DNA of 63,128 nt, counting the filler, from Reticulomyxa filosa (lineage: Eukaryota > Protista > Foraminifera): assembly GCA_000512085.1 (NCBI GenBank). It is 16 parts of 16 records of this genome, joined end to end, with 100 filler letters (N's around TTAATTAATTAA, not from the genome) between each part and the next. Parts side by side here need not be neighbours in the genome. Positions count along the whole stretch, not along the records: positions 1 to 20,782 come from ASPP01008639.1; 15 more parts are not named here. One strand, 5' to 3'. This document shows positions 2,576 to 17,987 of this stretch, piece after piece. The position numbers and the translations under genes are program-made. Each line of letters starts with the position of its first letter. The stretch's first letter is position 1. Under the pieces are notes generated by a model that saw nothing but the letters and a program-made list of their open reading frames with translations, ran no database searches and was not told the DNA's origin.

Positions 2576-3198
2576 CCCTGCCTTATTGTTGTCATAATGC
2601 TTGTCGTTATTGCCTTTGCTCTTCCACAGAACAAAGACAACTTGTACTTACCTCAAAGTTCCACATTGATAAAACAAGACAGAAAAAGTTAAAGATCTTT
2701 TAAATGCAAATGGAAACTGCAAATCCTCATCAACTTCACACAAATTATTATGGCAGGGGATTTTTTCCGTGAAGGAAAAAATCCCTTTCAGCCAGGACGT
2801 TTGTTTGGAATTTTCTATTTCGAATTTTACGTAAGAATGAATATAAAATCATTTTTTGTAACTGGCTTGTATGACCATCTTCTGAGTTATTAAAAAGATT
2901 TTTGGAATTATCAGAACGGAAAAAAGAAATTAAACGGCGACAGATTGGGCAATACAATCTTGGAAACCAACACTCAGCAAAATCAAAGACACAATAAGCT
3001 ACACAAAACGAGCACAACGTAATATAATTTAAAAACCAACATTTAGGATGTTACGCTAGTTTTTCGATTTACCTTCATTGGAAAAGAACACTGCCATTTG
3101 TGTCACAAAACCTATGATAGTGCCCTTTCTCAGACCGAAGAAAAAAAAGGAAAGAAAAAAGGAAAACGGGAAAAAAAAGGGGGAAAAAAAAAAGTATG

Positions 3199-4847
3199 TC
3201 AATGCATCATTTTGACATTGTCAAGCACATTTTTTCAAAAGCAAGCCAGTAATTGTCGCGAATAAGTTTTTTGATTTCCTTGTAAACAAAATCAAACATA
3301 TCTGGAGGAACAATAACTTCTTCTCCTCGATGAAATCTTGCGTTCAATTCTTTTACGTTCTTAGCGCACTGCAAAAAAAAGTTTTTTCTTTGTGTCCTAT
3401 CTCACTTCTCTCTCTCCAACAAAAATACAAACAAACCTCTTCTCTCATCTCGTATGAAATATTAATTTCAAAAGGTTCTCCAGGTGTCATACAACAATCG
3501 ACCATTTTTCGTGCAATAACTAATCGTTGTTTGTCGCTCATTGCGTATTCAAATTCTAAGTAAATTTTTAAAAACCACACGTATTCACTACAAGAATGAA
3601 CTTCTAAAAAACGACACAAGTATTGAAATCCGGTTGGATCATGAATGGTTTCCTCCTGGCTGTTCAGCCACTTCATATCACTTTTTGTTGCCTCTGACAT
3701 TGAAAATTTCATACAAAATTGTGGTAATTGATCCAATCCAAGGCCCATCATAAAGCCCATAGTTAATGTGAAAATTCTATCCATGCAATAGCGTACTGTC
3801 ACCGTATACGCCGACTCAAAAAATTCACCAAGGGCACCGTGTAGTACGTCCTTAGTTGCAATAAACAAAAATTTTTTTTTACGTATACTTAAAATTTTTT
3901 TTTTTTCCCCTCTCCGATTACCACAAAGATTTGATAATATTCTGGTTTCACGCCAATACTTTTGTGCATTGACGACAGTTTTCCCAATTTCGAATAGAGA
4001 GATGGCTCGTTAGCATGAAAAGATTCAAGAACCCATGTTATCTTTTTTTTACACAAACAAAAACACACAAAAAAAAATAATGCCTTTCTTTTGTGTGTTT
4101 TTGTTTCTCTTTTTGGTGACCTCTTTATTTCGCCTACCATTTTCATACATGTACATCCCATATTGTTGGCACCGTGTCTTAGCAACAGTTTTTTAGCAGA
4201 TGGCATCTATAGTGTAAGAGATACCGCATGTATGCTCAACCATGAAACTTGAAGACCCGTTTCGAAAACGTTTTGTAAAAAAAACAAAAACAAAAAAAAG
4301 GTATAATTAACTTTAATAAAAATTTTGGAAAAAAGCAATATTTGAAACTCCTATTTGAAAAGTGTTATTAAGTTTGATGTATTAGTTTCAGTTGGTCGAT
4401 TTCTCTCTCTTTGTGTGTTATGGTCTATCACCGTGCACTCTCATCTATCCTTAAAAAGTTAACTTCTTTTCGCCGAGGTACTAAGGCATTAATGTGCTCT
4501 GACCAAAAGTTGTACGCATGGCTAATTGTTGATTCCTTTATGAACACTCCCACTATGCGATCATCGGATTTTGAAGATGTGGACTCGGATATATCCTCCA
4601 ATTCTTGAATAAATGTTCCTGGCGAAGATAACACCATTTTTGACGAAATTCCATTGTAACTTTCACTTTGCTTGTCTGTTAACACCAGTTTATTGCTCGA
4701 TGTCGGTTCTAGCTGCAATGACTGTCAGACCGAAAAAACATAAACAATTTAAAACTGCAACACTCTAACATACAAAATTAAGTTAACTTTTCTGGCCATA
4801 TTCGTAGTAATATCTGAATTGATCACCTTTGGCTGTTTATTTCCCAT
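3199..4847 (-). CDS. Globin-RGS domain fusion protein (7 exons)
   Basis: GT-AG splicing gives MGNKQPK...TISHAYNFWSEHINALVPRRKE|EFQILLFSKIFIK|MPSAKKLLLRHGANNMGCTCMKM|ITWVLESFHANEPSLYSKLGKLSSMHKSIGVKPEYYQIFV|DVLHGALGEFFESAYTVTVRYCMDRIF (3/3 globin pattern, F8 His at 3964-3966). It continues ETIHDPTGFQYLCRFLEVHSCSEYVWFL...RLVIARKMVDCCMTPGEPFEINISYEMREE|CAKN...PPDMFDFVYKEIKKLIRDNYWLAF (RGS pattern). Stop at 3199-3201. Confidence 0.85.
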
Positions 4848-5548
4848 CTTTGTGCTCGTTAACCAAATGATTAAACTTAAAAAGTTTTTGAGAACTCCTT
4901 ATGTATGAATTCCAACTTTCACAGCGTTCAAAAGTTTCCAGCTACAAAAACTTTTTTCTAAAAAAAAGTTACACACAGTGCCAACAGTTTTTGTTTCAAG
5001 ACTATAATAATATTAATTTTAAGTCAAAAACTGACATTGATGTCATTTGTCGTTTTTTGTTACTTTCCTCAGTGGCAGCTCGTTAGTATTTGCGTTTGAG
5101 TATAATGAAAAAATCAAAGGTAAAAGTAATTGATATTTGTTTGAAATATTAAATTTTTGTTATCATGATTTTCTTGTTGTTCATTTTTAGAAATAGCCAA
5201 CGAAACTTGATTCAATAAAAAATGCTAAAAACTTTAAGTTAAAAAAAATAAATGAAAAAGATGTTTTGCTTTTCCAGTGAAAATTAAAAAAGTAAAGATA
5301 AGCAAGCGTGTTCTTCAACACAATCAAACAACATTTCTTCAATTTTTTATTATCAAAGTTATTTTTGCACTGTTCATGAGAATGATGTTACAAAAACTCT
5401 TTTAAAATACGAATATTCATAACAAAAAAGTAAATTTTTAAATTTCAGGAAATGATGTTCGTGTGCTGAACTAAGAAAAATTATTTTTTTCCAAGTAAAA
5501 TCGAATTAACAGAATCGCCATACATACTAACAAATAAGGAAATTGTAT

Positions 5549-8500
5549 ATGCTCACAAGGTCATCGTTTAGAAAGCGTGTAAACTTTCAAAATGATACAA
5601 AAAACATTTGATATATAATTTAACAAACAGCGAGATAAAAAAACAAATAAAAAAAGAGGCATCAATAAACAAAGGATATCCGAGATCATACTATATTTTA
5701 GATGTTTTGATCAGAGACCGCCTCTGTTTGGCTGCTTTTTGGAAAAAACTCAGTCAAAAAACTCTTCCAAACAAGTCAAAAAAGGGCTATCCATGTCAGA
5801 CATTCGAAGCGCTTTGCGAACTCGTAGGCCAATTTCGTATGATGAACGAGCACAAGACAGAGAATTTGAAAGGAGACTTCGCTTGTTAAATGGCATTACT
5901 TCACACAGTGCACGTAAACGTTCTCGACGTGAGTTTGCAGATGAAGGAGCGGATTCTGAGCCAGCTTTGAATGATATCTCCCCTCCACAGACAAAAAGAA
6001 AGAGAAGTTTGTTATAAATCTCAATTTAATCTCGAACCCAATGATTTTTTTTTTTATCCTCTCAAAAAACACAAAGCAAAACGAAAAAAAGCATTGAAAG
6101 AAAGTTGGTCTATATTTGTACAGACACTAATGATTTGAATGACAAAGCGCTCCGTCGATCGGTGCGACTTGCAAAAAGTATGAATTCAAACTTGGAGTGT
6201 TTTTGATTGGAGTGAGAAACTAAAAAAACAAACGAAAAAAAAATAGTCGAAGAAATGAGACAAAAAAAACAATACACTATAAATATTGGAATAGTGCAAA
6301 GCAGCACAAAATGGACCCCGGATGAAGAGGATTCAAATCATACAAAACAGCAAACAGAAGTGTGTTGGGAAAGAAAAAAAAAAAAAAAAAAAAGGGAAAA
6401 CAGTACCAATCAAAGTAAAATAATAATGATAAAAAAAATAAAAATAAAAAAGAGTGCTGAGTCGAATAACGATGGTTCAATTGATATATCGACAGACAAT
6501 GACATGAATCACGACGAAAATGAAAAAAATGGAAATGAAGAGAGCGAAAAAGAAAACGGACACCAACGAAAACGGCCGAGAAGACATCAAGAACAAAAAA
6601 AGGGAGAAGAAGGAAAGAACCTAGAACAAAAACAAGAACAAGAACAAGAACAAGAGCAAGAAAAAAAACAAGAACAAGAACAAAAACAAGAACAGGGACA
6701 AGAACAGGAACAGGAACAAGAGCAAAAACAGGAACAGGAACAAGAGAAGAACCAAGAACAACAAGAAAAAGTTCAAACTCAAGAAGAGGAGGAAGGAGAG
6801 GAAGAAAACAGTTCGTATGGTGTTAACAAAATACGACAATCGAAACGACTGAAAAATAAAAATCAGAAAAGGTATATTTTTTTTGTATGTTTGCATTTTG
6901 CAATATAATAACAAAAAAAAAAAAAAAAAAAAGGGTTAGAATTAGTCCGTTCTTAGTTTTTCATTTTTTTTTTTTTTTGGCTGAATGTGTGAAAAAAAAG
7001 ATACTTTGAAGCAAAGAAAAACCAATTGATGGCAATAAAGAAAGACAATGACAACTTGCCAATAGCCCTTCGTCGAAACAAACGCACCACAAAAAAGCCT
7101 CAAAATAATACATTGCAATACAAATCGATCCCGTACCAGAACAATGTGTCCGCGGACGAAGACGATAATGGAAACACTTCAAGTTCAACCGACGAATGCT
7201 TTGAACTACGGCAAGCAAGGAGAATAGCAAGGGATCGCATTCAAATCAAACCTATCAACATGCATGAACTTGGATTGTACAACGAAGATATGGCACCCAG
7301 TTTTGTTACGTTTAGCTTTTTTTTTTTGTCTACAAATGTCTTTCATTTATTTGTGTTGTCTTCTCTTCAACAAACGATTGCAATATTTGAAGCATTGCTA
7401 TATGTGCCTTGATAGGTCATAAGAAAACAACAAGTGCAGATATTACCCCAATGGATATTGATTTGAAGTTTTGTTTTTTTTTTTTTTTTTAACACATTTT
7501 ATATATACATACACATATATGTGTGTATGAATGTACATGTGTAATGTGTCTATGTGTTAAATACAGCGTGGATTGGACAATGGTCGGTGGATTGGAACAT
7601 CACATTGAAAAGTTAAAAGAAATGGTTGTATTGCCGCTTTTATATCCGAAAGAGTTTGCACAGTTCCGAATGAGCCCACCCAAAGGTGTCCTGTTTTATG
7701 GCCCTCCAGGCACTGGAAAGACTTTGGTCGCGCGTGTGTTAGCAGCTCAAGTTTAAAAAAATCACTAACTTTGTCACCCAATCAACAAATCAACCAATCA
7801 ATACAAATTTTTGGGGTTGTCTTTTTTTTTTTTTTTTTTTTTTTGGTGAAAATTCTACCAATTGGCTAGTGCTCCCGCCCAGGACAAAAAATGGCATTTT
7901 ACATGCGCAAAGGCGCGGATTGCTTGAGCAAATGGGTTGGTGAAGCAGAAAGGCAGTTGCGGCTTCTCTTTGATGAAGCTCACAAACACCAACCCGCCAT
8001 TATTTTTTTTGATGAAATTGACGGATTGGCCCCTGTTCGATCATCGAGACAAGACCAAATTCACTCCAGTATTGTGTCCACGCTGCTGGCATTGATGGAC
8101 GGTTTGGACTCACGGTATTTTATGTATTTCATTGATGTGACGTGTCATGTCGACACTCAATATTGTACGATATACACGTCATTTTGTTTATATGTGTGTG
8201 TGTGTGCCAACACTTGTCAAGTGGACAAATTATAGTAATTGGCGCAACTAATCGACCCGATGCCATTGACCCTGCTTTGAGGAGACCAGGACGATTTGAC
8301 CGCGAATTGTGTTTCACATTGCCATCCAAGCAAGCTCGCAAGCGCATTTTGCAAATCCACACACGCACTTGGTAACTTTGTGTGGCTTCCATTTCTAGAG
8401 TCCTTTGTGTTGTCTTGTGTGTGTGTGTGTATATGTATATGAAGTTTTGTTTTTTTATCCAAAAAAAAAAAAAAAGGCCTCAGGCAACCGACAAAGATCT

Positions 8501-10815: not shown

Positions 10816-11121
10816 ATAATGAAAGCCTTAAGCAAATTTTGCGTTACAAATGCCCGGTTGTCGTTGTTTTTTGTATTGTCTTTGTGCTGTTGCAGCATTT
10901 ATTGTGTGGTTATTTGTTTTTCCATCCTATTTAAGATATATCACATCACACAACATTGCAAAACAATGACATAATACATATTTTTTTATGTTTTCTTTTG
11001 CGGCAAAGTCTGGCAATCACGACTGGTCATGAAAACAATTTTTTTGAGGTTTTTTCGTTCAGTGAACCCCAGAGACAGGGACCATATTAAAAAAAACCTG
11101 CATTTAAAACTATTTTTCACA

Positions 11122-11841
11122 ATGTCTAAAAACAGAAAACAAGGATCCAATGGAACAAAAAGTGGAGATGAAACACCGAAAACAGAGACAAAACAACCAT
11201 ATGACTACTTAATTGACCAAATCGCGTTTTACGGAGCCTACCACAGCACCCTGGGAAACCAGATCATCCATATCATATTTGTGCCAGTGATATTGATCAC
11301 TGCATTGTCGATGCTGTCATTTGTGAAGATATTGATGCAGCCAGTAAATTTTTTGTGGTTTGGTGGTGAAATCTTACACACCAACACGCCTCTCTTCATT
11401 ATTTTTGTATTAATGTATCCTGCTACCTATGTCTACATTGACTTCTATTCCGGTTTGAGTTGGTTGCCAATGGCTTCATTTGTATGGTTTGCGGCTATGT
11501 TCTTGGTTGACAGTTAATTGTCAATAGTAAAAATTTTTGGACAATCTGAAAAAAGTAGTTTTTTTTTACATGTATTGCGAATAGATTTGAAATGGCCAAT
11601 AAGCTCGCTGCTGTTACTCCACTCTGTGGCTTGGATTTTTCAATTTATTGGACATGGGGTCATTGAAAGAAGAAAGCCAGCATTGCTCGACAATTTGTAT
11701 CAGTCAATTGTCTTGGCGCCATTTTTTGTATGGTTTGAAACTGTGCTTTTTCCTTTGGGTTACGGAAATTCAGTTGGCCTGAAAAGGAATATTACAAGAA
11801 AAGTCAAAGAACTGCAAGTGAAACTTGACAACAAACCATAA
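11122..11841 (+). CDS. MPO1: Mpo1/DUF962-family membrane protein (2-hydroxy fatty acid dioxygenase-like), 2 exons
   Basis: FYGAYHSTLGNQIIHIIFVP and WIFQFIGHGVIERRKPALLDNLYQSIVLAPFFVWFE motifs. Intron at about 11513-11585. Confidence 0.88.
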
Positions 11842-12001: not shown

Positions 12002-15000
12002 TTAATTTTGTGGATAATACATCCTCACTTTGGAATGCCCTTGTGCATCTTTAAACACTTGATAAGCACCATCCTTTTCGTCTTTGATCATTTCTGCAAA
12101 TTTTACATCATGTGTAATTACTATCAGTTGAAAGTTTTGATCTCTTCGTCTCTTAATAACTGTTTTTAGTGCAATGGCTAATGATTCAATGTTTTTTGTA
12201 TCTAAGTTTGTCGTAGGTTCGTCAAGGGCAATTACTCCGCAGTTAATACATAAACACTCTGCTAATGACAATCGTATTAACAAACTTGCCAATACTTTTT
12301 GTCCAGCTGAGCATCGTCCACGCATGTCTAACATAGTATTTCTTTGATACATTACAACCGAGTAATTGTAATTTCTTCTTTTGTCTATCGCTTGTGTCGA
12401 TTGGATTTCGATAAAATCAATGTCCCCTCCATGATAGGTTTGTTGCCATAATTCTTTCAATACAGCATTAATTTCTCTCATTTGTTGTGTATGAAATTGG
12501 ATTAATGAGTGATCCAACGCGTTATGAAACTTAGCTGTGATTGGTACAGTAGACAAAGCAAAGTCAACACAAATATAAATAAAATAATGTTATTTTTTTC
12601 TTGTCATACATCCCCGCTATGCATTCGTTTGCTTAGAGAGTGACACAAGCATTTTCTTGATCAAAAGCCCAAACTTAGATCTTTAATTGCCAACTTAGTA
12701 GTTTCTGCTCGAATTGTTTGTTCTCGAAAATTGTTTTCTATGTTTACGTATTTTTCTGATTTTAATTGTTGCATCAACTCACACGCTTTACGTTTTTCAG
12801 ATTCAATCATCCCTTCCGCTTTGGACTTACGGGATCGAATATCATTAATTTGCCTTTTTTTGTGTGTTGCACATAGAAAGTAGAACGAGAGATAAGGTTA
12901 TAATTTCAACAAACACAAAATTTGAAGTATTTTGTTAACTGACAAATGGTACTTATTTCGGTTTGAATTGCCTCCAAATCTCCGAGCGATGTCGCTTTCT
13001 GCTGTAGTTCTTGGATATCCTTCATAAACATGAAAATGGGATTCGATTATTAGTTAAAAAAAAGATCAAAGAAAAACAAAGAGGGATAAGTCTTTCAAAA
13101 CTGTTCGTTTTTCTTGTCTTTTTTTTTGAAGATCTCTGTATTCCAAATTGGCTTTAATATCCCGAACACTAGTTTCAATTTTTGACAAATATGATTCCTG
13201 CTCTTTAATTTTAATAGTGAGTTCATTTTCCTGTGCTTTCAACGTTTCCAATGCAATTTTAATTTTTTCAACAGAGTCAGTGACTGATCTGATTTCGGAC
13301 AATTGTTGCTGCAATCGTTGATATTCACCATAAATGCGCTGCAATTTTTCACTGTCATTTCGAGTTTGTTGTTTTTTCGTCATAAAGTCTTGTATATCTA
13401 TTTGCAACGTTGATCAGTATTAACAACAACAACAACAATAAAAAAGCAGGCTTTTGTTTTATGTCCTTCCCGGACGACAAAAGACATACTCTTTTCGCTC
13501 AATTCTTTTTGTTCTTGTTTTTGGTTGTTTAATTGAACAAGTATTTCTTCTATCGGATCAATTGTGAGCTGTAAGGTCTTGAGTTCCGCTTGAATGTCAC
13601 TATTGCCCATCAAAGTCAACCAATCACCAATCAACAAATTTTTTTAAAAAAAAATGGACAAACAAAAATGTGACACACAAAAAACAAGCCAAACAAACAA
13701 AATAAACTTTTCTTTTTGAATGCAATCTTGGATGGAGCTTTCAAATTTATTTTTTTTTGCAATGGAGTGAGAAAGATTATTGGCCTGTTCATGCAGCTGC
13801 ACTAAACGCGAAGTCAAGCGTTGTGTTTCTTCCTCAATGCAACGGATCTCCTTGGCACGCTTTTCGATCTCTTGAGTCAATTCATTGCACTCCTTTTCTG
13901 CTATTTTGTATTCGCCTTGTAGCCGACTAATACTTTTTGCTTCATCCCCTTCGGTATTTTCATTATCCAGCTGCGCCCGCAATTGCGCTAATTCCTTGGA
14001 GATCCTATCCATTTGTGCAAGTTGCAAAGATATCGCGGCTGTCTTTTGAAGCAGTGCCTGAGTAATTGCAAATTTTGCCTGTGACTCGTTTTGACAAGTT
14101 TGGAGCTCATGCAGCTTGTCACTCGCCTGTATTTGTATATCATAACAACTTGGTTTCATTTATTTATGTTTATTTTTTATTTTTTTTTTTTGTGGTAAAA
14201 ACATTAGACTTTAGCATAACCTCCTTTTGAGATTGTCTTTTTTCCATTATTTCTTTGTCAATGCTTTCTATCTGTTGTTGACTTCTATTGATTCGTTCGA
14301 GCAGTGGTCTTTTTGCTTCCAAGCCTTCCAAGTGTTCTTTATCTTTCCTCATTTCTTCTCAGAGAGTGCACATTAAACAAAATTATTATTATTATTGTTT
14401 AATACCCCTTTAAACTGTTGTATAACATATAAATGTTGGCAAGTACGTACCTTTTTCATGTGCATTGATCACATTGTTTTGTTCCAACACTTTCATACGG
14501 TTGTCATTCTCACTAAGGAAACGATTCAATTCATCATCATCACCAAATTTGCGACGGCAAACAGGACATAAATGTTTTTTTTTTGCAATCTGTCAACGTT
14601 CAGAAAGGTTGGAGGAATGGTGTCATTTTCACATACAAAAAAGATGCTAAGCATATGTGTATGTGTGTGTGTTAATTCATAACGCTGTTAAATTGAATGT
14701 ACATTGTCGTCGCACTACTACTTATTGCAAACTGATCAGTTGATTGCTTAAGTTTTTCCTTTGCTTGTTCAATTTCTTGATCCAAATCCTTCCCCATGTA
14801 ACATCATTGTTTAAAACAACAAAAAATTTAAAAACTACCATTTTGTTGTTTTATTGTCTTTGTTTGTGTTTTAAGTTTTGCAATATGAAGATAATCATAG
14901 CATGGCAACAACAGATTCAAACTTCTGCTTGTTTAGCATCCGAAGAGTTACAAATTTCCATATCACGAGTAATTTGCTCTTTCAATTTATTTTTTTCGTC

Positions 15001-17987
15001 TTCCATCCTCTGTGTTCATTTCATTGTCATTGCCAGTATACATATATATACATTTTTTTGTTTGGTTTTGGTTTTTGCAAAGAAAAAGAAAAAGAAAAAG
15101 AAATGAGAAGATTATCTACAAACTGCGATGGTAGATTCATAACCAGCCAGTTTATGCTTGATATCTTCGACATTTTTGTATTGTTGCTCGATACTCGTTT
15201 TCAATGAATCATATTGAACCCTGAGATGTTTATCCAATTCTTCGATGGGAGGGCAATCATCTAGTACATTGGCAACATCTCCTTTAATGTCGTTCCATAT
15301 TTCGTCCAACTCTTTCTTCATTCGCTCAATGTTTTCTTCTTTTTCGCTCAATTTGCCAGCCAAGGTTGACTAGTCATGTTTTATTTTTTATTTTTCTCCT
15401 TTCAATTTCCCTTGCTTGACCAATTTTTTTTTTTAACAAGCAACCTCATTTTGTAAAGTCTGCATTTCCCTTAATAACTCTATCATCGATTGCTGGGATT
15501 GTTGTTTTTTCTTTTCCAGGTCTTTCATCTCGTTTTTGAGGTCTTGGACAGCATTGGTTGCATTGTGCTCCTTTTGTTTGATGTTCCAGGTATTGTATTT
15601 AGCTTTTGCTATCATTCTTGTTTTTCTTAGTGTAAAACGAAAAAAAGTGTTTTTCTCTGCAAAACATCAAATTTTGATTTGGTGGCAGCAATGGCATTGT
15701 CAATATCTTCATTTCCTTTCAAAAGAGCTTCTACAGCTTTCAATTCAGTTTCAAATTCCTTTTTTTTATTCACGTTCTCTTGAGCTTGAATTTTTCTGAA
15801 ATCGACACAACAGTATTATTTGCACTTCTCTTTGGCAACCAATCAGTTTTGTGAGTTTTTTTATTTTCCTTTAAAAAATTAAAAATCGAAACAGAAATTG
15901 TAGTCTCGCACGATGCTCGTCTCTCTGTTCAGTATTAGTTTGTATTGACGCTTGCAGAGATTTACCGCGCTCAGCGTGTTTTTGCTTTTCCGAGATTATC
16001 ATCGTATCGAGTGATTTCAGTAGTTTGGTCAAAGCAGTTGAAACTTCTATCACAACATCAGTCCTCTCATCAATGTTATTACTTTTTTTTTTTTTTTTGT
16101 GTTTATTACTGAAATAGGTATTTCTTTGTTGTTTTTTTTTAAAAGAACGCATCAAACTTGGAGTGAGGTTTGGAATTGAGTTCGGTGTGCTTGGTGTAAG
16201 AGTATCAAGAGGCTCGTCACTGAAGTTTGTCAATTGATTGTTTGTTATTATGCTATTAATGATTGACCTCAATTCCTCTTGTTTTGAATTGAAATCATTT
16301 TGAACGTGCATCAACTGTCCTTCTTTTCGTATTATATCTTCCCACTTTAAGTATTAATTTAATAATTGTGTCATATTTTTTTTTTTGGTTTTATATTGTT
16401 TGATTTTTTTTTTTTAGAAGACAAACCTGGTTTTTCATAGAGGCAAGTTTGGATGCAACTTGCTCCCTTTCCGTGATTATTCCATTCACTTCGTGGGTCT
16501 TGGTTTCTTTCCCCATTGAGTTATTAGCCAAAAATTCTTCCAATTCATCATCTTTTTCTGTGTTTGGATCAAAACAGGAAACAAATAAGTAAAAAGCAGC
16601 TAAGCAGATAAAAGAAGCAAAAATGGTCAAAATACCATCATATTCAGACTCCATTCTGTTGTAAGCTGCTTCCGCCGCTTTCTTTAAATGATCAAAATCT
16701 CTTTTTGCGGTATCAATTTTATTACGAATCTCTTGTAGTTTTGCTTGTTTTTCACGTAACGGCCTGAAGTATAAAAAAAAGTTGTTTATTTTCAAAAATA
16801 TGTACGCAAGTGCAAAGAGTGTTATGTTTCCAATTTGTTTAAGCAAAACTCCAAAGAGCTTTCAAGTTCGGCCAATTTTTCATCACATTTCGTGATTATT
16901 TCGTGAGAGCTTGCCATTCTGGTTTTGGTTTCGTCCAGGTCACTTTGCAACTGTGTTCGTCCCCAAAGTAGTCATTACAACATCCTTACTCCTCAAAAAA
17001 AAAAAAAAAAAAGAAAGGATTCATTAAAGCAAATATTGTAATAATATACTATCGAACAACAAATAAGTGTTTGGAAAGTTACACAAGTGATGGCTCACAA
17101 CAAACCTTGTGTGCGTGATCTAGGTTGTTGGTGATGACTTTCAAATCAGATTCAACATCTTTTAAGTCAACATTTAATTTTTTCTGATACTCTGACACTT
17201 GTGTCAATGCCTTACTCCATCTATTTTCCGATTGGTTTTAAAAAAAAAAAAAAAAGAAATATAACAGAAGTATGCTGCTCAAATGTTCACAATTGGAGGA
17301 TTGCAACTTTGACAAATGGTCATTCTTCAGATCAACAAAAACAAAAAAAAAACCTGGTTGTTGCAAATATTTCGTCAAATCTTTCTTTCAACTTTTGAGA
17401 TTCTGTCAAAGGCCAGCATGAATCCTCCTGTTCATTGCGTCAACATGCAGACAAAAGTTATCGGTCTTCTTTTTTTTTTTCCTCTCTTCCTAAGCAAGTA
17501 AAGTGACTTGATGGCAAAACAACACATTTTCCAAAATAGCTTTGGAAACACCCATCAATTCTGGAATCATTTTTTTCATGTCGGCGCATTTTTGAGACAC
17601 AGACACAATTTTTTGAGTCCCTTCGTCCCACTTTTTTACAACACTGTCCAGCGTTTTGAATTCGGACTTGGTTTTTTTATTTGTCAATTGTAAACAGTGT
17701 ATTCCTATCACTGGCTGACCATCCCTCAATTTCAACCCAATTTTTATTTGTGCCTTCACAATACTTTCGTTACAGTGCTTGGGGTCATGCAAAAATGTTC
17801 TTCCACGGTCAGTTAGTGGTGGAGGCTCACCAGTACATGCATACTTCAATGCTTCAATTATTGTTGTTTTACCACTGCCGTTGTGACCAATGATCATTGT
17901 CAACGGGTGGAAAAAACGAATAACTACAGGAGATTGAGAATCATAGGAACGAATTCCTGAAATTAAAAGTTTATCAATTGTTGTCAT
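12002..17987 (-). CDS. RAD50: DNA repair protein RAD50 (multi-exon)
   Basis: N-terminus [12 protein letters not shown], Walker [25 protein letters not shown]|EDSCWPL, zinc hook [10 protein letters not shown] (~14550-14575), long coiled coils, signature [10 protein letters not shown], Walker [19 protein letters not shown]. Confidence 0.97.

Follow-up and report, generated by a model that had tools for sequence, protein, structure and literature searches.

Does a single gene of the foraminiferan Reticulomyxa filosa join a globin to a regulator of G-protein signalling (RGS) domain, and what could such a protein do? The question is posed by a gene on the minus strand, at 4847-3207, of a 63,128-nucleotide stretch of DNA (the window), made of 16 parts of the genome assembly GCA_000512085.1 joined end to end. 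An initial annotation had proposed here a complete globin followed by an RGS domain in one intact frame. Our present results show that this globin-RGS gene is real, expressed and under selective constraint.

The gene model was obtained by three-frame reading of positions 2900-5200, after which the exon boundaries were tested. Its frame is intact across seven exons and six introns, 1074 nucleotides in all, corresponding to 357 codons and a TGA stop. The six introns foreseen in the initial annotation start with GT and end with AG in every case, and their G+C content is 24-34% versus 37% in the exons. The encoded protein opens with an MG start and a low-complexity, disordered stretch, continues with the globin (residues about 64-202) and a linker of 22 residues, close to the 25 or so first estimated, and ends with the RGS domain (about 225-351). 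All the motifs on which the first reading leaned are present: AYNFW, KMPSAK, LGKLSSMHKSIGVKPEYY and DVLHGAL...AYTVTVR in the globin, and DPTG, EINIS, DMFD and EIKKLIRD in the RGS domain. Exon 6 holds the globin G and H helices together with roughly two thirds of the RGS domain (Pfam RGS positions 3-74). Because this single exon spans the end of one domain and the start of the other, the fusion is independent of splicing, as had been argued.

Transcripts were taken from one public run (X1, 2015) in the form of Logan contigs, which are 95-99% identical to the window. Two of them join 4632-4463, 4350-4312 and 4206-4138, breaking exactly at the modelled exon ends, and one of these exon 2-3-4 contigs (record 3) runs on for 9 letters identical to the first of exon 5. 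A third contig (record 2) opens on 11 letters identical to the last ones of exon 5 and spans 3851-3506. Spliced forms of four out of six proposed junctions are thus present in the contigs, from which it follows that the run holds complementary DNA, and the loose ends reaching exons 5 and 6 agree with the claim of one transcript read in one frame. The contigs put exon 3 at 4350-4312, giving the join IK/MPSAK (KMPSAK); an alternative exon 3 at 4310-4242, through a T-rich stretch, was rejected, since it is out of phase with exon 4 and contradicted by the spliced contigs. Inside the exons, 20 differences between contigs and window were listed. Third codon positions account for 19 of them; of the 19 that offer a single alternative, 18 leave the amino acid unchanged (chance p ~1e-8). 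Because the differences are nearly all synonymous and at third positions, the frame is under purifying selection.

The product of exon 6 is 100% identical to NCBI RFI_11832, a hypothetical protein of 181 residues that UniRef names an RGS domain-containing protein. Its annotated start, a Met, lies within the H helix of the globin, so that the public annotation lacks the globin altogether. The last intron of the NCBI model, which adds 12 residues (VCLTQRKNFFLQ), was rejected: in the family, the distance between INIS and the conserved Phe that follows, exactly that of the relative P0018, fits the 3436-3369 junction. RFI_11832 is therefore truncated, and the gene needs to be annotated anew. That NCBI annotates the RGS half only, and that the Pfam Globin profile stays below threshold on the exons of the window, would be expected if two adjacent genes, an assembly chimera or a pseudogene had been mistaken for a fusion. 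Such an artefact is extremely improbable, as one exon spans both domains, the spliced contigs differ from the window almost only synonymously, and the same architecture occurs in four other genera and in an unspliced form.

Table 1. Exons and introns of the globin-RGS gene, the public gene model and neighbouring genes (positions in the window)
Feature	Position	Strand	Content
Exon 1	4847-4827	-	Start codon ATG (MGNKQPK), then GT donor; Gly2 a candidate N-myristoylation site
Intron 1	4826-4713	-	114 nucleotides
Exon 2	4712-4464	-	Low-complexity N-terminal stretch, pre-A segment, globin A helix (AYNFW)
Intron 2	4463-4351	-	113 nucleotides
Exon 3	4350-4312	-	Globin B helix (EFQILLFSKIFIK) with B10 Phe and B14 Phe; both junctions in two spliced contigs
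Intron 3	4311-4207	-	105 nucleotides
Exon 4	4206-4138	-	C helix (C2 Pro), short CD region (CD1 Leu), first half of E helix (E7 Met, E11 Cys)
Intron 4	4137-4042	-	96 nucleotides
Exon 5	4041-3922	-	End of E helix, F helix with proximal His F8 (codon 3966-3964), FG turn
Intron 5	3921-3851	-	71 nucleotides
Exon 6	3850-3437	-	Globin G and H helices (to about 3743), 22-residue linker, RGS helices 1-6 (from about 3676)
Intron 6	3436-3369	-	68 nucleotides
Exon 7	3368-3207	-	Last RGS helices (DMFDFVYKEIKKLIRDNYW) and TGA stop; BLASTP matches to C-termini of family proteins
RFI_11832 (NCBI)	3207-3868	-	Public gene model, RGS half only
AAA ATPase	7891-8232	+	
Mpo1-like	11029-11514	+	
RAD50/SbcC-like ATPase	12005-17987	-	AAA_23, SbcC_Walker_B

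The search for further proteins of this architecture, suggested at the outset, revealed that the gene is not a lone oddity. In the R. filosa assembly (101.9 Mb, 50,809 contigs), where the gene lies on contig C8639, the exon 6 protein found contigs C39049 (72% identity over all 138 residues) and C11748 and two contig-end fragments. On C1535, Pfam scans detected both domains in the same frame, and the C1535 copy, used as query, led to C3886, C25321 and C16115; the paralogues match along the entire exon 6. A profile built from the R. filosa copies (A1) placed the globin-RGS junction at seven distinct loci at least, with two fragments and one weak match besides. Run against 1.84 billion cluster representatives, the same profile gave 393 matches at E <=1e-3. 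Among 152 proteins (the best 150 of these matches and two cluster members), 76 have both domains aligned, and their typical length is 350-450 residues.

Thirty of the proteins were looked up, and the named ones are all foraminiferal except one fish protein without the RGS part. The genera are R. filosa itself, Ammonia sp., Elphidium margaritaceum, Nonionella stella and Bolivina argentea, and transcriptome proteins of the last four carry both domains in one frame. Both Pfam domains pass their thresholds in P0007 of Ammonia (Globin 36.0, RGS 36.7 bits), P0006, P0018, P0022 and P0030 (Globin 32.8 bits); in P0100, Globin passes with 36.3 bits and RGS, at 22.7 bits, is slightly under its cut-off of 23.9. 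Two family proteins had been labelled "hemoglobin-like flavoprotein" by the Joint Genome Institute (JGI) pipeline. A 21.9-kb metagenome contig (ENA ERZ893790 k147_1348310; L019) holds two members of 775 and 340 residues as uninterrupted open reading frames, which points to intron-less copies in some foraminiferal or related genome. Because the metagenome member is a single reading frame, the fusion does not depend on any splicing model. Taken together, these matches make up a large and apparently undescribed globin-RGS family, spread over at least five genera and so far found only in Foraminifera.

Some observations concern proteins at the margin of this family. In the fish protein (P0039, Pseudorasbora parva XP_067298588.1, 3209 residues), globin positions 21-59 of the A1 profile are matched 16 times, and it may be a repeat protein or a contamination. 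Seven tandem Pfam Globin domains (499 bits) are present in P0110, a protein of 1029 residues from a JGI contig. On R. filosa contigs C11514, C8350 and C8718, Pfam Globin scores about 51 bits and no RGS match was found on those contigs; these loci are probably stand-alone globins. The C16115 copy has a frame change inside the RGS domain (L014:1975-2025; EKHQKFI, a stop, then HFSLGAG in another frame), which may mark either a pseudogene or a homopolymer assembly error, and which NCBI RFI_19592 skips.

How secure is the globin? The exons of the window were searched against Pfam one by one, with full-length database relatives as proxies for the whole protein. The Pfam check proposed at the outset was only partly borne out on the window: RGS scored above its cut-off, and Globin (PF00042) reached 15.1 bits on exon 5 (E 0.034, positions 54-83) against a cut-off of 22, passing it in full-length relatives. 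The score is low because the domain is split over five exons; even the partial paralogue P0002, 72% identical, gives 19.4 bits. The globin assignment is accordingly weak on the window alone and strong through its relatives. Alignment A2 combined 32 members of full length with two R. filosa proteins and, each in a row of its own, the six longer exons of the window. Among PDB sequences, its profile matches Hell's Gate globin I (3s1i; chain residues 20-135) at E 8.7e-15, and phytoglobins and neuroglobin at 1e-6 to 1e-5. With the partial alignment A1, globin matches in PDB were weak only (E 0.07).

Evidence for the fold comes from P0007, which is 38% identical to the main exon of the window and whose residues 108-130 match exon 4 without a gap over 23 residues. 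Its AlphaFold2 model has a mean predicted local distance difference test (pLDDT) of 82, above 90 over residues 70-360, and a predicted template modelling score (pTM) of 0.72. Top Foldseek rows for this model alternate between globins and RGS domains, with a template modelling score (TM) of 0.84 for 3s1i. By VIA-align, model residues 69-208 superpose on 3s1i with Z 17.0 and a root-mean-square deviation of 2.1 A over 131 of 131 residues; myoglobin residues 1-145 can also be aligned to the globin part, and the best neuroglobin match is a mutant without the CD region. The modelling thus makes the N-terminal domain of the family a 3-on-3 globin that is complete, as first claimed, and has a short CD region. 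Its sequence assigns it to the myoglobin-like (M) and not to the sensor (S) type, Hell's Gate globin I and neuroglobin being the nearest. The A-helix Trp of the window is kept in 60 of 64 family rows, F4 is Leu, and the proximal His falls in the family F8 column, where 80 of 91 rows have His and 10 have Tyr.

The RGS domain claimed to follow the globin is seen more directly. In a six-frame scan of the genome, Pfam RGS (PF00615) scores 26.1 bits on the window (cut-off 23.9). Exon 6 by itself reaches 23.7 bits, and the annotated product (P0001) carries PF00615 as well. Compared with PDB, the A2 profile matches RGS2 at E 1.6e-14 and axin at E 4e-8. The nine-helix RGS fold is present in the P0007 model, where Foldseek gives TM 0.82 for RGS1, 0.86-0.87 for RGS8 and 0.83 for RGS2. 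As the best sequence and fold matches are the R4-family proteins RGS1, 2, 8, 16 and 18, the domain shows itself to be R4-like by profile and predicted fold. Potential partners are plentiful: exon-level matches in the R. filosa genome exceed 150 for G-alpha and number at least 41 for RGS, and one of its G-alpha subunits (L021:835-2193) starts with MGSCTC, which suggests that the partners are themselves built for acylation. The heterotrimeric G-protein signalling set of this organism as a whole is greatly expanded.

We lean, by a modest degree, towards reading the globin-RGS protein as a heme-based gas or redox sensor that acts on G-alpha through its RGS domain. The N-terminal glycine would be acylated and hold the protein at the membrane, beside acylated G-alpha subunits; in the 35 family rows aligned at that column the residue is always Gly, as in the window, and paralogues start with MGNCY, MGNCL or MGLCCSG, of the dual-acylation type. 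Heme would be bound by the globin through His F8. A diatomic gas, nitric oxide (NO) or O2, or a change in the redox state or coordination of the iron could then shift the F, G and H helices, the last of which is predicted to continue through the 22-residue linker directly into RGS helix 1. Such a shift may alter the binding of the RGS domain to G-alpha-GTP and the acceleration of GTP hydrolysis, and the lifetime of active G-alpha would be set by gas or redox state without a receptor. We infer all three parts of this scheme, namely heme on F8 His, a sensed ligand, and gas or redox control of the GTPase-activating protein (GAP) activity of the RGS domain, from sequence and modelled structure.

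Several observations weigh against this reading or parts of it. The exon 1/2 and exon 6/7 junctions of the model lie outside the contigs, leaving these two without transcript support. Position 6 of the window protein is Pro, which misfits the small residue of the usual myristoylation pattern. In the globin, CD1 is Leu instead of Phe, which is nearly universal at this position among globins (the family column holds 35 Phe, 14 Leu and 12 Met), and the distal pocket formed by B10 Phe, E7 Met and E11 Cys is apolar and unusual. The G-alpha contact residues Glu87, Asn88, Asn128, Asp163 and Arg167 of RGS4 correspond in the window to Glu, Tyr, Asn, Asn and Ala, so that Tyr replaces Asn88 and Ala replaces Arg167. 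A complex prediction between the Ammonia G-alpha P0211 and the RGS part of P0007 (residues 222-362) scored 0.01, which is no evidence either way. Finally, the joint loss of key residues from both domains, discussed below, comprises three independent events only (sign test p 0.25), in one of which the sister group already lacks the RGS Asn.

The apolar distal pocket makes stable O2 binding by the window copy, and O2 as its specific ligand, doubtful; NO, carbon monoxide, redox change or a His/Met or His/Cys coordination switch appear at least as likely. Many family members, P0007 included, have B10 Tyr and E7 Gln, a combination with which other globins tend to hold O2 tightly, and across the family both positions vary widely. 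This variability, the CD1 Leu of the window and the Tyr found at F8 in some rows could also mean that the globin fold no longer binds heme and acts in an RGS protein as a module for regulation, dimerisation or ligand binding, much as in RsbR of the bacterial stressosome, whose globin domain has no heme. We regard this as quite unlikely, since F8 His is present in the window and in the large majority of rows and the family profile aligns with heme globins along almost the full domain (E 9e-15).

A comparable doubt attaches to the output. RGS-homology domains of GRK2, axin and sorting nexins offer a precedent for an RGS domain that is not a GAP and works as a scaffold for G-alpha or other proteins; axin is among the profile matches, the Asn88 equivalent is hydrophobic in most family members and the Arg167 equivalent is variable. 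Against a scaffold speak the best matches, which are GAP-competent R4 domains, and the Asn128 equivalent, kept in the window (codon 3463-3461) and in 41 of 56 full-length members. Asn128 of RGS4 is the most critical G-alpha contact residue, and Asn at the Asp163 position occurs also in RGS2. On balance a scaffold seems an unlikely role, and we retain an RGS domain that would act on G-alpha as a GAP.

Whether the two domains are kept up together was addressed on a maximum-likelihood tree of 56 full-length family members. Three losses of F8 His fall on this tree: one in the P0003/P0004 clade, one in P0104 and one in the P0085/P0086 clade. The RGS Asn is absent from five of five His-less proteins versus 10 of 51 that bear the His (Fisher p 8e-4, uncorrected). 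Functional coupling of globin and RGS domain is on this count suggestive only. The R. filosa subfamily of C3886 (L012), C25321 (L013) and C16115 (L014) has Tyr for F8 His and Glu or Asp for the RGS Asn, and may be heme-free and GAP-dead.

Co-loss bears also on the possibility that the globin works as an enzyme or a scavenger (as NO dioxygenase or nitrite reductase, or in handling peroxide), with the RGS domain only targeting it to G-alpha at the membrane, or with the two domains acting independently. The nearest solved globins, that is Hell's Gate globin I, phytoglobins and neuroglobin, do not count among the classical signalling sensors, and the usual view of such globins is that they handle NO or O2. 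The MG start is reminiscent of globin X and other globins bound to membranes, and the RGS contact residues are canonical only in part. Yet the fusion has no reductase partner domain, the order of globin, short linker and output domain is retained throughout the large family, and loss of F8 His accompanies that of the RGS Asn, suggesting joint upkeep of both activities. We think an enzymatic role improbable, though worth keeping in mind, and continue to prefer a sensor that acts through the RGS domain.

Extended to the whole group, the proposal is that Foraminifera possess an expanded, lineage-specific family of membrane-anchored heme-globin-RGS proteins that sense gas or redox state without a receptor and directly determine how long G-alpha-GTP persists. 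This wider claim is tentative, and we hold it with rather little confidence. If it is true, NO from the cells' own denitrification, O2 and the redox state of iron are candidate signals, pseudopodial behaviour and metabolism could be steered across oxic-anoxic gradients, and the family would be the first eukaryotic class of globin-coupled sensors with a G-protein output. Foraminifera are noted for life across oxygen gradients and for denitrification. Bacterial heme-based gas sensors are well known, with chemotaxis, cyclic di-GMP signalling and kinases as their outputs; the link between globins and signalling in eukaryotes is thin, its main example, neuroglobin and G-alpha-i, being debated. A direct gas or redox input to heterotrimeric G-protein signalling would become testable with a single recombinant protein, and a family with dozens of members is now defined for comparative work.

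The genes around the globin-RGS gene (Table 1) are ordinary and have no evident link to it.

How does this family compare with known systems? The initial annotation knew of no characterised globin-RGS architecture, and we likewise found no description of it, or of foraminiferal globins, in the full-text literature, a coverage that leaves out most subscription journals. The closest published theme is neuroglobin in the role of a GDI (an inhibitor of guanine nucleotide dissociation) towards G-alpha-i, a precedent for a globin acting on G-alpha (PMC4842972). In both cases a globin is linked to G-alpha, with a redox-dependent effect that for the foraminiferal family is presumed; by fold as by profile, neuroglobin is one of the best matches of the globin domain. 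However, neuroglobin is a single domain that contacts G-alpha itself as a GDI, whereas in the globin-RGS protein a separate, fused RGS domain would face G-alpha.

The comparison with globin-coupled sensors, drawn already in the initial annotation, holds in domain order and fails in globin lineage. HemAT, EcDosC and AfGcHK likewise have an N-terminal globin directly before a C-terminal output domain in one chain, and share the presumed logic by which ligand or redox state controls output. Their globin, however, is of the S lineage, related to protoglobin, and that of the foraminiferal family is of M type; Pfam Protoglobin (PF11563) gives 13.8-21.6 bits on the family against a cut-off of 25, below PF00042 wherever both score. 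In contrast to these bacterial and archaeal proteins, the family is eukaryotic and has an MG start of the acylation type. Because its globin is M-type and not S-type, the globin-RGS family is best placed outside the bacterial family, with an independent origin, and the term globin-coupled sensor is used for it as an analogy. The outputs of globin-coupled sensors known to us are methyl-accepting chemotaxis proteins, diguanylate cyclases, kinases and STAS domains, never RGS.

Taken separately, each half has close relatives. Hell's Gate globin I is the best match in sequence and fold, and both globins are compact 3-on-3 structures with a short CD region, the B10 Tyr and E7 Gln of many members (P0007 included) being a further point of likeness; it is, however, bacterial, stand-alone and soluble, and the window differs from it by its B10 Phe and E7 Met. 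The R4 proteins RGS1, 2, 4, 8, 16 and 18 have the same nine-helix domain, and their Glu87 and Asn128 equivalents are kept in globin-RGS; they carry only a short amphipathic N-terminus and no globin, and differ from the window at the Asn88 equivalent. The plant protein 7TM-RGS1 is also a sensing module fused to an RGS domain, and there the signal acts on G-alpha deactivation and not on nucleotide exchange; its sensing module is a seven-transmembrane domain, that of globin-RGS would be a globin. By its architecture, the foraminiferal protein would be a heme-based sensor of known kind to which a new output is attached; put the other way, an RGS protein whose input is new.

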